From positions 62,001 through 126,000 of IMG/VR virus record IMGVR_UViG_3300029893_000001: DNA of 64,000 nucleotides; one strand, given 5' to 3'. Of the stretch, positions 5,057-44,769 are shown in pieces. Every line of letters begins with the position of its first letter. Position 1 is the stretch's first letter. Position numbers and translations under genes: made by a program. The notes beneath the pieces were generated by a model that searched no databases, had not been told where the DNA came from, and was given only the letters and a program-made list of their open reading frames with translations.

Positions 5057-5434
5057 TTAGCCCTCCCAATAGACGGTGGACAACGTTCCCTGCTCTGGAA
5101 GATCCCCAAGTGCCAAGAGAATGTCGTTACCATCGATATCAATTCCAAGCTCCACGGGGACGTTTAGTTCGGAACTGGATAGTTCATCCATCCGAGAGGC
5201 GTCCCGTTGGTTGAAGATCTCAACAACGCAGTGGAGAATTCTTTTGAGAACCGGCGTCTCAGGATGAAATCTATTCAGTTCCGAAAACGGAATCCTCAGA
5301 TCTTGGTCCCCCATCAACCTGATGAGGGTCCCGATAGCTTGAAGCTCCGAGCCTGCACTCTCATCAATCTCTCGGTTGAGCTTCAGCCTGAAGCCGGTTC
5401 TTGTAAGTCTCTTGCCCATATCACCACAGAACAA
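5057..5434 (-). CDS. hypothetical protein
   Basis: 125 aa ORF within gene run. Confidence 0.55.
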   Translation of the reverse strand: MFCGDMGKRLTRTGFRLKLNREIDESAGSELQAIGTLIRLMGDQDLRIPFSELNRFHPETPVLKRILHCVVEIFNQRDASRMDELSSSELNVPVELGIDIDGNDILLALGDLPEQGTLSTVYWEG

Positions 5435-5719
5435 CTAATACGTTGGAGACAAGATGATCGCTTTGCGTCCATCCTCGATGAGGTCTTCCTCGTCGTATCC
5501 CTCTTCCTCCAACTCTGGAGTTAGTTCAGAATACCCGACCTCGCCGTACCAAGTCGTTTCGGCTCGATAGACCCCAGACCAAAATCCAGCAAGTGGTGTG
5601 TAGTCGTTCCCCTCGCCGTCCTTTGCCATAACGACGATGGCATCGGGGTCACATGTTTTCAGTTGCTCAATGAGCTGAGCAACCGTCATGGTATGCTCAT
5701 ACAGATCTTTGTCTGTCAC
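5435..5719 (-). CDS. hypothetical acidic protein
   Basis: MTV..LIEQL...DPDA.VV N-terminus typical of small phage proteins. Confidence 0.6.
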   Translation of the reverse strand: MTDKDLYEHTMTVAQLIEQLKTCDPDAIVVMAKDGEGNDYTPLAGFWSGVYRAETTWYGEVGYSELTPELEEEGYDEEDLIEDGRKAIILSPTY

Positions 5720-39592: not shown

Positions 39593-40255
39593 CTAACAAT
39601 CTTTGTACGCTAAAAAGTCTCTGGCAAACCGCTCTGGGTCGATTCTTTCGTCTGCAGCGAAATCATCACGAGAAAGCTCAGGATTAGCCTCAAATGTAGT
39701 TGAATGGTCAACTACGACCCCCCGAACCGGCTTCTTCTTAAGCGCCGTAACTAGCTGCACGTATGAGCTATTTCTTTGGCTAGGAGAAGAACAAGTAAAA
39801 ACGAATCGTGACAGGCTCTCGGCCTTCTTAATTAGTCGATCTGCCTCTGGTGTGAGCCAGTCAATCTCATCAATGAAAACAGCATCGAATCTGATAGACG
39901 TGTCATCTTCTAGAAACTTCCGTACTGAGTACGTATGAAAGCAAGCGGGCAAGTCCGACAAAGAAAGTGGTGCCACATGTAGTTTGAGGGGAGTGAAGAA
40001 ACATGCATTTACCTGGGTCGCCGCGCCTACTACAGCAATCTGGTGTGTCTTCCATGGGTCTAGACCCAGAAAATCTAGACAGATGATGGGCGCAAGATGC
40101 GTCTTTCCAGCCCTCTGTCCCCACAACACATGAACTGAACTGGCCTTACGTGCTAGTCGCCTGATTTCAAGCTGTCTGTCCCGAAGACCCAAGTCATTCG
40201 ACAGAAATCCATTGAGACCGGCGTGCAAGAATGTGTCGCTGGGATTAGTAGTCAT
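39593..40255 (-). CDS. stand-alone terminase-like P-loop ATPase domain
   Basis: WGQRAGKT, FIDEID, SSP, TFEANP. Confidence 0.6.
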   Translation of the reverse strand: MTTNPSDTFLHAGLNGFLSNDLGLRDRQLEIRRLARKASSVHVLWGQRAGKTHLAPIICLDFLGLDPWKTHQIAVVGAATQVNACFFTPLKLHVAPLSLSDLPACFHTYSVRKFLEDDTSIRFDAVFIDEIDWLTPEADRLIKKAESLSRFVFTCSSPSQRNSSYVQLVTALKKKPVRGVVVDHSTTFEANPELSRDDFAADERIDPERFARDFLAYKDC

Positions 40256-40806
40256 CTATCTAGCTTTCTAAACGTTAGGGAGATACGTCCGCCGCAAGGT
40301 TCTGAGTGCTTGGGGATCTTGTGGAAATGATTATCCTGATACCCACCAGGCATGATGAAAACGGATCCCTTGGTAAGAAGGAACTTGTCTTCTTCGGGAA
40401 TGTTGCCCTTAAAAGACTTCTCCTTTACATAGATATACCTCTCCGCACCAAACGACACCACCGCAATGGGATGGCTGAGATCCTGTTCTGGGCTGTCATC
40501 TGCGTGCCAACCAAGGTGCTGATGCTGCCCCTGGTAGTAGTTCAACACACAGACATTGTACTGGCATCCGAATTCAGCGTTCAGGCGCTCTAGGATGCGC
40601 AAGACAGCAGGATGCATCGGCACTGCGTGATACGTATGGAGGGCCTCCCTCAGAGAATTATTGTTCCCGTAACTGTACGATAAGCTCGTGTCAAGAGCCA
40701 TGAAGCATTCGTCACGAGGAGACGAGCGGTTTGTCCACGGAACGTTTTGACGAAGCTCTTCAAAAAGATCCTGGGGCTCATACCCAGGAATGAACTCGGG
40801 TCGCAT
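40252..40806 (-). CDS. AlkB-family 2OG-Fe(II) dioxygenase
   Basis: LNYY...GWHAD...HKIPK...RISLTFR. Confidence 0.9.
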   Translation of the reverse strand: MRPEFIPGYEPQDLFEELRQNVPWTNRSSPRDECFMALDTSLSYSYGNNNSLREALHTYHAVPMHPAVLRILERLNAEFGCQYNVCVLNYYQGQHQHLGWHADDSPEQDLSHPIAVVSFGAERYIYVKEKSFKGNIPEEDKFLLTKGSVFIMPGGYQDNHFHKIPKHSEPCGGRISLTFRKLDR

Positions 40807-41812: not shown

Positions 41813-42082
41813 TTATTCGTGAGGGTACCCATCGCTGTTGTGCATCCTACGAAACCACTCAGAAAATACTCGATCGTATTCTCGAAGCCACATCTCGCCA
41901 AGAATAGTGTGAAGTTCGTCCCCCAAACCCAAGTCCTCAACAATATTGTCCAGGTCTTGTTCCGCTTCTTTTAGCTTCTCCTCAAGATAGCTTTGCTTGA
42001 AGTGGACACAGTCAGGGTTGATACAATCGACATTTGAGAGGCCGATGTATGCGTCTTCGGACTTGCAGGCAGGGCATTCCAT
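41813..42082 (-). CDS. zinc-ribbon protein
   Basis: CPAC...AY.....VDCINPDC. Confidence 0.55.
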   Translation of the reverse strand: MECPACKSEDAYIGLSNVDCINPDCVHFKQSYLEEKLKEAEQDLDNIVEDLGLGDELHTILGEMWLREYDRVFSEWFRRMHNSDGYPHE

Positions 42083-42083
42083 C

Positions 42084-42524
42084 TCAGTACTCGTAATAGC
42101 CCTTGTCGAGACGCATTTCAATTCCGCAGAACTTAAGGATTTCTAAGTTCCGCTCTTCATGCGTAAGAGCAGAAAAAGCATCCCACACAGAATTCCAATC
42201 CTTTTGTCGGTCCTCTCGACGAAAACTATTAGGGAGATGGTCCCGCTCCAACGAAAGCAAGGTCTCGTATGGAAGTCCTGGATACGTCGGAGGCCGAATG
42301 ACGCTCATCCCTAAAGCGAAGCCAAAATGGGAAGTCCCCATTCTGGCAGCAAATCCCTCTTTCCGTACGAGGGATTTTACCTTACGCCACTCCCAAGGAG
42401 TTAGTGGACGCGCCAAAATATGGCCCTCAACACGTCGGCTGTGCCGACCATGCATCTGGCTATATGAATGAGACTTCCAGATTTTCTCGTTGAGACTTTT
42501 GAGGTAAGATGCTGCGTCTGCCAT
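42084..42524 (-). CDS. hypothetical protein
   Basis: ORF within gene run. Confidence 0.5.
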   Translation of the reverse strand: MADAASYLKSLNEKIWKSHSYSQMHGRHSRRVEGHILARPLTPWEWRKVKSLVRKEGFAARMGTSHFGFALGMSVIRPPTYPGLPYETLLSLERDHLPNSFRREDRQKDWNSVWDAFSALTHEERNLEILKFCGIEMRLDKGYYEY

Positions 42525-42536
42525 CGAAAACTCTAA

Positions 42537-42640
42537 ACCCACACCCAGGAGTCGAACCTGACCTCCACAGTTTCGTAACAACGGTCCTAAGGCTCGCGGC
42601 CCGGTCCAGTGCGTTGTGGAGTCCCCCTCGGGAGTGTGGG
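42537..42640 (-). ncRNA. tRNA-framed RNA with about 45-nt insert replacing the anticodon loop
   Basis: CCCACAC/GTGTGGG acceptor, CTCCACA/TGTGGAG stem, TCAGG-TTCGACT-CCTGG T-arm. Confidence 0.65.
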
Positions 42641-42646
42641 ATTATC

Positions 42647-43267
42647 TCATAGATACTGTTCGGCCTTATCACCGTGAAGTGCCTTGACGCGATCAATCCA
42701 CGCCTGATTCTTCACCTTGAACATCGTGGGTGCCTCCCACTTTTTACTGAGTGGGGCCTTAGCCACGACACCCTCGAACGTCATCCCTTCCAAGGAGCCG
42801 TTGCGAATTTGCTCCTCTAGTTCCTTGTTGAAATTGCCACGGTGCAGCAACGCTGGGATGTCTACGACGCCATCGAACAAGCGCAAAAACTCGCGCGTGT
42901 CGAGCAGGCCCTGCTTGTGCACATGCACGTCGATCAGGGTCACCTTATGCGGTTCTACCTGATGTAGGCCAGCGAACGAATTCGGTCCCCAAAACTCGAA
43001 AAAGCAAACAACCTGCTGCCACCGCTCGCTTTGAAAGGCTTTGGCCAGGGCTTCTTCGAGCTGCTTAACCAAATCAATAGACTCTGCGAGTAGCGTCTGC
43101 TGGTCTGTCTCGCCTCGCTGGCCCAACAGCACCTTCCTGCTGCCGAACTTGTAGAAGCCCTGCTTCTTACTCCACTCCGCTCGGATATTCGAGCCGTCAA
43201 TCTTGTCGAAGACATAGTAGGGACCGCCGTACTGGACGGTCCTGGAAATCGAGGGGTACTGCTTCAT
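42647..43267 (-). CDS. RNA ligase-like nucleotidyltransferase (Rnl2-type)
   Basis: KIDGSN, FEFWG, EGVV, FKVKN. Confidence 0.75.
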   Translation of the reverse strand: MKQYPSISRTVQYGGPYYVFDKIDGSNIRAEWSKKQGFYKFGSRKVLLGQRGETDQQTLLAESIDLVKQLEEALAKAFQSERWQQVVCFFEFWGPNSFAGLHQVEPHKVTLIDVHVHKQGLLDTREFLRLFDGVVDIPALLHRGNFNKELEEQIRNGSLEGMTFEGVVAKAPLSKKWEAPTMFKVKNQAWIDRVKALHGDKAEQYL

Positions 43268-43638
43268 GTTTTCATTAGCTCGGGATCCCCGCTCAACTCC
43301 TCATCCGTGAAAAGCATGAGTTGAGGATCGTCTTCTTGTTCAAAGTCGAGACCGCTATAGTCAGTCTCCCGCGGAGGAATGACCAACGTCTCACAGAACT
43401 CATCCCAACATGGCTCACAAATGTCTATCTGCTGACGTGTAAGATCCTTCTTGGAATAGAATCCCCAGCACTTGTCAACAGTGACGCACTCCATTGAGCC
43501 AATGTCTGGACTGCCCATAAAGGAAAGCCCATAATGATTCTGCGGTACTGTTGAAATGGACTTGCCGCACTTATTGCAGATGATATCATCAATGATGATG
43601 ACTTCATTCGTCTCGATTTCCTTATGTGTCTTTAGCAT
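43264..43638 (-). CDS. zinc-finger hypothetical protein
   Basis: CNKCGK...DICEPCW. Confidence 0.6.
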   Translation of the reverse strand: MLKTHKEIETNEVIIIDDIICNKCGKSISTVPQNHYGLSFMGSPDIGSMECVTVDKCWGFYSKKDLTRQQIDICEPCWDEFCETLVIPPRETDYSGLDFEQEDDPQLMLFTDEELSGDPELMKT

Positions 43639-43653
43639 TACCAAGCCCTCGCA

Positions 43654-43725
43654 CGCCTGCGGTGGGGATCGAACCCACGACATAGGGATTTAGAATCCCA
43701 CGTTCTACCACTGAACTACGCAGGC
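43654..43725 (-). tRNA. amber suppressor tRNA (anticodon CTA)
   Basis: Canonical cloverleaf; GGGA-TTCTAAA-TCCC. Confidence 0.88.
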
Positions 43726-43748
43726 AAACGGCACCAAGTTCTGGTGCC

Positions 43749-43768
43749 TAGTATCGCTAGGGTTCAGC
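43749..43768 (-). promoter_or_regulatory. conserved 20-bp motif, copy 8
   Basis: GCTGAACCCTAGCGATACTA, upstream of the suppressor tRNA. Confidence 0.65.
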
Positions 43769-43860
43769 CGCTTTCTAAGTCAGCGGAAGCAAAAAGATCG
43801 CTTCAAGCGCGCCCAGACAACAGCGACGAACCCCTACGTCGACGCCACGGAGTAGGAATA

Positions 43861-44184
43861 CTAGGTGACACCATCACCACTCTCTAACTTCTCACGAGTG
43901 GCCCATGCCTGAAGGTCAGGCTTCGTAGGAAAGTTAGGAGCACTCTTAGAGACGCGTTCTGCGCACGCATACGGAGTCCCATTGTGGAACGCTAACGTCA
44001 GGTGACACAAACGCGCCAAGGCAGACAATACATGCCTGTACCTCTGTAGGTCTGCCTGCTTGGAAATGTCGGTCTTGGACCGACGTATTTCTCTTCGGGC
44101 CCAGCGAATTTCCTCGTTTAGACCCTTCAAATGACGCTCCACAGATCTCTTCGTTAGATAGTCCATTTTCATCTCTCCAGTCAA
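43861..44184 (-). CDS. hypothetical protein
   Basis: 107 aa; H...AF..G.PY...E motif. Confidence 0.55.
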   Translation of the reverse strand: MTGEMKMDYLTKRSVERHLKGLNEEIRWARREIRRSKTDISKQADLQRYRHVLSALARLCHLTLAFHNGTPYACAERVSKSAPNFPTKPDLQAWATREKLESGDGVT

Positions 44185-44310
44185 ATGTGTAGTCGATCGA
44201 CTCCGGTGCGACCGGTGCGACTAGAGAGGAGGACCCCTAGGGAGGTGGAGCTACGTGAATCCGCTATGGACCTACAGCATCAAACTATCCTAAATCTGGG
44301 TTCAATGTTG

Positions 44311-44625
44311 TCAACCACGTTTGTGCCATACTGGCTGGTCCGTCTTATGACGACCAGCCCGCTTCGAAACCCAAGCAACAAACCCTGCGACTTTATCGTG
44401 AGCACGGAGCCTATCTAGGGTGTTGTACTCGGTTCCCAGAACCTTCTCTGGGATGAAACGATGAATGGCATCATGGCAGTCTTTACATAACTCAGATCCA
44501 CTACTGAGTTGCTCTGCCGTGAAGTTCTTCTTGAACCACTTCCTAGAATGAAGTGTCCTTGGAATCAAGTGGTGGAACGTCAGATCCAGACCTTCACGAC
44601 CACAGAGTTCACAGGCATCCGTCAT
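44311..44625 (-). CDS. HNH-like nuclease (YisB-type)
   Basis: CELC...TFHHLIP...LCKDCHDAIH. Confidence 0.75.
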   Translation of the reverse strand: MTDACELCGREGLDLTFHHLIPRTLHSRKWFKKNFTAEQLSSGSELCKDCHDAIHRFIPEKVLGTEYNTLDRLRAHDKVAGFVAWVSKRAGRHKTDQPVWHKRG

Positions 44626-44769
44626 TCATACCTCATCCGTCTAAGTTTGGTTGACATTGGGATGGTGTGAATTTGCCCATTCACCCACTTACTGTCAGCT
44701 AACCATCAGGTAGCGGTTCGGGAAAGTTAAATGAAAGACAGCAAGTCTTGTCATGTTGACTGTTTTACA

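Follow-up and report, generated by a model that had tools for sequence, protein, structure and literature searches.

Orphan stop-codon-reading tRNAs in jumbo phages that keep the standard code are a recurring and unexplained puzzle. Xanthomonas phage XacN1 (about 385 kb, standard code) carries two CUA tRNAs, and in-silico readthrough of 18 amber stops yielded no targets for them (PMC5852040). Pectobacterium phage vB_PcaM_CBB (378 kb) has a tRNA labelled 'Pyl' with the anticodon CTA, and Sinorhizobium phages phiM12, phiM7 and phiM19 have a UUA-anticodon tRNA, which in phiM12 reads UAA. A Klebsiella phage paper takes up the same open question on orphan stop-reading tRNAs. Borges et al. reported suppressor tRNAs mostly in recoded phages, and also in one standard-code relative; the route to recoding that they describe starts from low GC and rare stops. 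The recoded code-15 phages (crAss-like, Lak) share with the locus described here a phage-encoded CUA tRNA that is presumably charged by the host, but differ from it in carrying in-frame TAG within genes for structure and for lysis, in their low GC and rare TAG stops, and in having RF2 where a release factor is present.

The locus lies in a stretch of 64,000 nucleotides, here called the window, which corresponds to bases 62001-126000 of a 392,328-bp IMG/VR record (G000) of an uncultured phage. CheckV rates the record as complete. Its GC content is 53%, and almost all of its 44 tRNAs and its tmRNA lie on the minus strand; ARAGORN places 28 tRNA genes in the window, every one of them on that strand. 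RNA-related accessory genes, namely an AlkB-like oxygenase, an RNA ligase and an HNH endonuclease-like ORF, are dispersed between the tRNAs, and two other records, G007 and G008, also have tmRNAs. Among the tRNAs of the window is one with the anticodon CUA (tRNA-CUA). It belongs with the orphan CUA tRNAs of standard-code jumbo phages, a phenomenon already known from XacN1 and CBB: the gene sits in the tRNA island of a phage larger than 200 kb in which TAG is a stop, and it has no identifiable target.

The comparison with XacN1 extends to jumbo size, a large tRNA complement, the standard code, the CUA tRNA itself and the lack of target genes, with the difference that the two CUA copies of XacN1 sit in long terminal repeats and that its host is known. 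The two phages are unrelated: for DNA polymerase A of the present record, identity to cultured phages does not exceed 28%, the value for the best match. The stop-codon-reading tRNAs of CBB and the phiM12-type phages similarly occupy tRNA islands of large standard-code phages, and are among the nearest to tRNA-CUA in the cultured-phage collection (81-83% over 61-63 nt). Common descent with them is not established, because the likeness resides mainly in generic D and T arms and is equalled by Asn and Lys tRNAs (79%).

The gene was brought to attention by a first-pass annotation, made from the sequence alone, which described a canonical cloverleaf with anticodon CUA and G73. This description was borne out by ARAGORN, by Rfam and by direct reading of the sequence. 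At window 43653-43726 (-) ARAGORN places a tRNA whose anticodon is CTA, and RF00005 matches it over model positions 1-71 of 71 at a score (gathering score 29) that ranks sixth among the 26 tRNA matches of the window. The acceptor stem has 7 bp (GCCTGCG/CGCAGGC), the D arm a 4-bp stem with the loop AGTGGTA, and the T arm a 5-bp stem with the loop TTCGATC, while the variable loop has 5 nt with C48 at its end. Read from the minus strand, U8, A9, A14, G18G19, A21 and G26 are in place, and the set of universal nucleotides and tertiary pairs is complete, U33, G53, T54, psi55, C56, A58, C61 and the 15-48 pair included. The only departure from the canonical form is in the topmost pair of the anticodon stem, where U27 and U43 are mismatched (U27:U43). 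Discriminator G73 is followed by TGC, so that CCA is not encoded, and the same holds for most other tRNAs of the genome.

The anticodon, at window 43691-43693, lies in a 7-nt loop, UU-CUA-AA. With CUA in a loop of this size, U33 and a purine at position 37, it has the form of an amber suppressor anticodon, and the U33-CUA-A37-A38 loop suits the reading of a U-starting codon. ARAGORN labels the gene as tRNA-Pyl, an identity that we rejected. A tRNA-Pyl is recognised by a 6-bp anticodon stem, a 3-nt variable loop, a small D-loop without G18G19, the absence of T-psi-C and a single base between the acceptor and D stems. No such hallmark is found in tRNA-CUA, which has a 5-position anticodon stem, a 5-nt variable loop, GG in the D-loop, TTCGATC in the T-loop, and both U8 and A9; the label arises from the anticodon alone.

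We also considered whether the anticodon could be a sequencing error, a possibility that the first-pass annotation had named as a potential refutation. All 31-mers sampled from window 42600-44700 (100%) were present in separate assemblies of four runs, and 98-99% were present in two further runs. The six runs, of subsurface and rock metagenomes, belong to three studies, and every one of them may be a source sample. With the 31-mers recovered in six runs and three studies, an error in the anticodon is unlikely. None of the RNA runs among those checked contained the tRNA stretch. The coordinates of the gene and of the features that surround it are given in Table 1.

Table 1. Features of the tRNA-CUA locus and related features of the record (window coordinates unless another record is named)
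Feature	Position	Strand	Remarks
ORF pair	5057..5719	-	5435-5719 ends in TAG; 5057-5434 follows in frame, with TTG directly after the stop and ATG five codons later
AlkB-like 2OG-Fe(II) oxygenase	40252-40806	-	PF13532, E 2e-22
G000-specific block, ~2.4 kb	41813..44184	-	ORF107 (ends in TAG), motif and tRNA-CUA, ORF124, RNA ligase, ORF165, ORF102
RNA ligase, 206 aa	42647..43267	-	PF09414, 30 bits against a cut-off of 27; in the tRNA-CUA transcription unit
ORF124 (124 aa)	43264..43638	-	Directly 3' of tRNA-CUA; weak zinc-ribbon match PF18912, E 0.009, below cut-off
tRNA-CUA	43654..43725	-	ARAGORN; Rfam RF00005 69.8 bits, full model; cloverleaf drawn; universal positions read from the sequence
23-nt leader, motif to tRNA	43726..43748	-	Hairpin GGCACCA-GAAC-TTGGTGCC then GTTT, read from the sequence
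Motif copy 8	43749..43766 (core 43749-43763 behind TGA)	-	TGA ACCCTAGCGATACTA; presumed promoter
HNH endonuclease-like ORF	44311-44625	-	Among tRNAs
tmRNA	G000 130,644-131,041	-	Outside the window; tag peptide ANNVVSLFGNVVANDNGTAEPLPLAA
Class-I release factor, RF1 family	G000 264,583-265,270; L005 927-1614	-	Outside the window

To place tRNA-CUA among other tRNAs we compared its body with those of sense tRNAs and known suppressors. Its nearest counterparts, at 78-79%, are Asn and Lys tRNAs together with other phage suppressors; Gln tRNAs are the least like it (at most 62%). Within the genome the best match is a Thr tRNA at 74-76%, and an origin from a sense tRNA of the same genome was rejected, as this left no close parent. 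Laboratory amber suppressors (E. coli/T4 supE, supF, Su7 and T4 psu1+) are single anticodon mutations of identifiable sense tRNAs, in which CUA is placed in a normal elongator tRNA; their suppression is partial, competes with RF1 and is tolerated by the cell. Unlike these, tRNA-CUA has no close sense parent in the genome. The phage encodes no synthetase of the three families tested (Glu/Gln, Trp/Tyr and Asp/Asn/Lys). In E. coli, amber-suppressing CUA tRNAs that lack a strong acceptor identity receive Gln or Lys through U35, and G73 favours charging with Gln. By inference only, Gln or Lys may be the residue carried by tRNA-CUA.

The region upstream of the gene bears a conserved 17-nt motif, YGA-ACCC-NNNN-GATA-N-TA (ACCCNNNNGATANT[AG]), and the first-pass annotation had placed an eighth copy of it ahead of the tRNA. 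A genome-wide search upheld this and found 71 copies on the minus strand and none on the plus strand, against an expectation of 1.85. The copies are intergenic in 59 of 71 cases, with the next called start no more than 50 nt away for about 60% of them. They cluster at 1-148 kb and 306-392 kb, and the interval of 185-305 kb is free of strong copies. Within the window the minus-strand positions are 1327, 8468, 14963, 17414, 19449, 31532, 36445 and 43763, the last of these being copy 8, which ends 23 nt before tRNA-CUA; other copies lie directly upstream of a tRNA-Gln pair and of a tRNA-Glu. The motif contains a -10-like GATANT and lacks a conserved -35 region. Its strand, position and number suggest that it is a promoter, probably that of one temporal gene class. 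In the relatives G001 and G006 there is no copy at all. A pairing of the motif with the downstream leader as a hairpin was also considered and set aside, the excess of complementarity being weak (8 copies against 3.2 expected).

No terminator is present in the sequence between tRNA-CUA and ORF124. A Shine-Dalgarno-like AAGGA lies approximately 20 nt past the 3' end of the tRNA, and the ATG of ORF124 is found within about 30 nt. With no terminator after the tRNA, the motif would head an operon in which tRNA-CUA is the first element, followed by ORF124, the RNA ligase and others. Homologs of the RNA ligase in other large phage contigs are 43-52% identical to it. The earlier description of a tRNA with its own conserved promoter thus stands as regards the motif copy immediately upstream, and has to be modified in that the putative promoter would be shared with the operon.

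These observations allow us to propose a model, to which we give about an even chance, in which tRNA-CUA is an expressed and recently gained amber suppressor that is weak at ordinary TAG stops and has no dedicated target; its transcription, charging, amino acid and suppression are all presumed. One lineage of huge standard-code phage would have gained the gene recently, within a small accessory block of the tRNA island. Transcription would start from the motif copy, with the tRNA at the head of a short operon, and RNase P and 3' processing would release the tRNA, to which CCA would be added afterwards. A host synthetase would then charge it, Gln or Lys being the usual outcomes for such CUA tRNAs. 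The charged tRNA would compete with RF1-type termination at ordinary UAG stops in both phage and host messages, and the outcome would be partial readthrough with short C-terminal extensions. It would serve no recoded or dedicated readthrough gene in the genome, and any benefit would be diffuse, in the form either of host protein disturbance or of the buffering of amber mutations. Counting against this model are the U27:U43 mismatch, the lack of the stretch in any RNA run, the absence of the gene from the only relative that covers the region, the lack of clear adaptation of the genome to a suppressor, and the presence of a release factor of the RF1 family, whose action would oppose suppression if it is specific for UAG.

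We examined the distribution of the gene among relatives of the phage. The only relative that spans the tRNA-CUA region is G006, a 133-kb IMG/VR fragment that is collinear with 43-199 kb of G000. G001 (IMGVR_UViG_3300009702_000016) is syntenic only to 150-320 kb, and the tRNA island lies outside this range. The G006 fragment has 20 tRNAs in the order of G000, including ...Trp, Thr-GGU..., and no CUA tRNA. The gene belongs to a G000-specific block (Table 1), and the orthologs that flank this block are only 256 bp apart in G006. The only relative to cover the region is without the gene and so lends no support to purifying selection on tRNA-CUA. A search for orthologs gave a similar picture. None turned up in five related records, an exact-pattern scan of IMG/VR that allowed any anticodon was equally negative, and a scan with a looser pattern returned one match only, an unrelated suppressor of an AT-rich phage. 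The 20-kb loci of relatives found via the RNA ligase contain tRNA islands and no CUA tRNA. The idea that the block is a cassette was rejected, as the RNA ligase was its only member with homologs in other loci.

We next looked for signs that the genome had adapted to a suppressor. In-frame backup stops no more than three codons on follow 22% of TAG, 12% of TAA and 16% of TGA stops, a small difference. The share of TAG is lower at 150-306 kb (9.7% against 19.7%, p = 0.006), and G000 also has fewer TAG stops than G001 in orthologous genes (p = 0.002): among the discordant pairs, 21 TAG stops of G001 are TAA or TGA in the G000 orthologs, and five are the reverse. Stop usage thus differs sharply between these syntenic relatives, TAG ending 30% of G001 genes and about 10% in the orthologous region of G000. 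Among 22 three-way orthologs the TAG count is 3 in G006 and 2 in G000. An interpretation of the depletion as adaptation to tRNA-CUA was therefore rejected, because G006 is similarly TAG-poor and no CUA tRNA was found in its fragment. Overall, there is no clear sign that the genome has adapted to the suppressor.

The same observations bear on an alternative in which tRNA-CUA is a neutral passenger, an intact tRNA without a selected function that arrived with a mobile block, or that is poorly charged or expressed, and that will be lost again. We regard this account as possible but doubtful. It would explain why the gene is missing from the collinear G006 and confined to a G000-specific block, why no ortholog appears in the related records or the IMG/VR exact-pattern scan, why stop usage and backup stops show no adaptation, and why no target genes were found. 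HNH endonuclease genes scattered through the tRNAs, such as that at window 44311-44625, fit it as well. Three features of the gene speak for a working suppressor instead. The cloverleaf has no flaw at any universal position and its score is one of the highest for a tRNA in the window, the U33, A37 and A38 context is what an efficient UAG reader needs, and a good copy of the phage's own motif lies upstream. Given that this motif is absent from G001 and G006, its presence here indicates that tRNA-CUA is wired into the regulation of this phage.

To determine whether the genome is recoded, we measured coding density as greedy ORF coverage under the standard code and with each stop in turn read as sense. 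The first-pass annotation had proposed a comparison of codes 11 and 15, and this gave no recoding signal: the density is 0.919 under code 11, and 0.927, 0.917 and 0.921 with TAG, TGA and TAA as sense, respectively. When the span from 140 to 300 kb is divided into eight 20-kb segments, the code-11 density is 0.97-0.99 in five of them. Every altered code alike raises the density at 120-140 kb and 360-392 kb, segments that contain tRNAs, the tmRNA and many promoter-bearing spacers. Gene calls under code 15, under code 4 and with TAA as sense brought no specific gain in density and were rejected. A codon-usage model called 509 genes, which end in TGA (303), TAA (120) or TAG (86, about 17%). The earlier observations that genes are intact under code 11 and that many end in TAG therefore hold for the whole record.

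Comparison with relatives supports the same conclusion. Orthologs whose C-termini align within 10 residues number 87 in the comparison with G001, of which 7 end in TAG, and 79 in that with G006, of which 9 do, which identifies TAG as a true terminator in this genome. Each stop was also masked as X in turn, and the frames so obtained were aligned to proteins called in two relatives. A true ortholog match runs across neither a TAG nor a TGA or TAA in any of these alignments; the single alignment that touches a TAG is an upstream non-coding extension set against a gap. Matches of the masked frames to six-frame translations of the relatives were off-frame artefacts only and were discarded. The genome thus has none of the marks of code 15, which are in-frame TAG in conserved genes, a rise in density, rare TAG and low GC, and it uses the standard code.

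A standard code accompanied by a CUA tRNA could also be read as a pre-recoding intermediate, in which the gain of a suppressor is the first step towards TAG reassignment, as has been proposed for gut phages. The published model does include a standard-code phage with a gained suppressor tRNA, and the combination found here, tRNA-CUA present and recoded genes absent, is what such an intermediate would look like. That model, however, begins with low GC and rare TAG, and a genome with 53% GC in which TAG makes up 17% of stops is a poor fit to it. None of the relatives is known to be recoded, TAG being a stop in the two whose code was checked, G001 and G006, and the release factor aboard is of the RF1 family, as opposed to the RF2 of TAG-recoded phages. 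The pre-recoding state suggested by the first-pass annotation is in this sense possible and out of step with the published route, and we consider it improbable.

We then asked whether individual TAG stops might be read through. In-frame continuation was defined as at least 40 codons of coding-like sequence after a stop, and is seen after 9 of 86 TAG stops (10.5%), 15 of 120 TAA stops (12.5%) and 31 of 303 TGA stops (10.2%). All nine TAG junctions have a start codon, which in eight lies 0-8 codons past the stop, as it does for the TAA and TGA cases; at the ninth, at G000 366492, it lies 37 codons downstream. Scans of both halves of five TAG junctions against Pfam and PHROGs found no split domain or family. 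Three of these five have a family match, and in each the matched ORF is full-length alone, the matched downstream ORFs spanning their PHROG family from the first position. The nine include the pair singled out in the first-pass annotation, in which the TAG of the ORF at 5435-5719 is followed in frame by the ORF at 5057-5434. The continuation there is real and ordinary, occurring at the same rate as after TAA and TGA. No family is shared by or split between the two ORFs in Pfam or PHROGs, and the pair is a chance adjacency.

These results weigh on the view that tRNA-CUA has a dedicated target, that is, an in-frame TAG or a programmed readthrough, whether by recoding of late genes or by a longer protein of the Q-beta kind. 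The nine TAG-ending genes that continue in frame would be its candidates, and most of the small ORFs have no homologs, which leaves room for a hidden case. Against this, continuation is equally frequent after TAA and TGA, every candidate has its own start codon, with eight of these within a few codons of the stop, and the downstream ORFs that could be matched cover their families from position one. No alignment to relatives spans a TAG, code 15 brings no rise in coding density, and XacN1 gave the same negative (PMC5852040). Among genes with families or orthologs, none has the conserved or same-family extension expected of programmed readthrough. The earlier suggestion of timed readthrough accordingly finds no support. 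The 392-kb record, in which the density is 0.92 and no in-frame TAG is backed by an ortholog, refutes within its bounds that of recoding confined to late genes elsewhere. The dedicated-target view is largely refuted, and we hold it to be very unlikely.

The record also encodes a class-I release factor. The gene is split, a 37-codon start ending at cGGAGGggaCTT TGA g and the remainder continuing in the +1 frame, and its two parts were searched separately. The protein resembles RF1 more closely than RF2 (151 against 96 bits with solved structures, and 198 against 132 bits with NCBIfam models); it is missing domain 1, retains the GGQ motif and has the tripeptide P-P-N in place of the P-x-T of RF1. 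The site at the split reads GGAGG-gga-CTT TGA and has the architecture of the prfB frameshift site, and the gene would need a prfB-like +1 frameshift. A 2025 survey reported that programmed frameshifting is absent from bacterial prfA (PMC12421855). The family of the factor is large, with members in at least 80 IMG/VR records, most of which are contigs of 60-470 kb, and some of its members are unsplit. In 14 related loci, the closest relatives included, the N-terminal piece lies in the -1 frame and ends in CTT TGA in 12 and CTT TAG in 2, and a GGAGG-like or GGGGG Shine-Dalgarno-like run precedes the site in 11 of the 14. A frameshift-dependent RF1-family phage factor is the more novel by-product of the tRNA analysis.

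No RF-1 domain was found in G001, G002 or G006. The gene lies in a segment of about 10 kb (G000 264-271 kb region), against about 4.7 kb in G001 (52.9-57.6 kb), and its DNA aligns to that of otherwise unrelated phages of 61-63% GC, which suggests horizontal transfer. Three huge phages whose release factors are closest to this one encode 33-46 tRNAs, none of them a stop suppressor, with a tmRNA in two, and a 'code-change module' made up of tRNA-CUA and the release factor was rejected on these grounds. A further record, G009 (IMGVR_UViG_3300032024_000165; 198 kb), has a frameshifted release factor too. At G009 187,418-187,495 (-) ARAGORN gives a tRNA whose anticodon loop has 8 nt and whose anticodon has four bases (ttcg), which could be a frameshift-suppressor-like tRNA or a mis-call. 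There is only a slim chance that the phage tunes the strength of UAG stops during infection with two accessory genes, an amber suppressor driven by the abundant, early-type motif and an RF1-family factor without domain 1 that is encoded in the motif-free part of the genome and would depend on a prfB-like +1 frameshift at CUU UGA, giving a switchable stop while the standard code is formally kept.

The present case adds a clean example to the orphan stop-reading tRNAs of standard-code phages: the whole genome was checked and no target found, a collinear relative is without the gene, the three synthetase families tested are absent and there is no adaptation. Such an example argues that a phage can acquire and keep a tRNA of this kind with no recoding at all. 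For annotators it follows that a CUA tRNA alone is no reason to switch a phage to code 15. If suppression is real, this phage would be a natural test of how much global UAG readthrough is tolerated or exploited in an infection.
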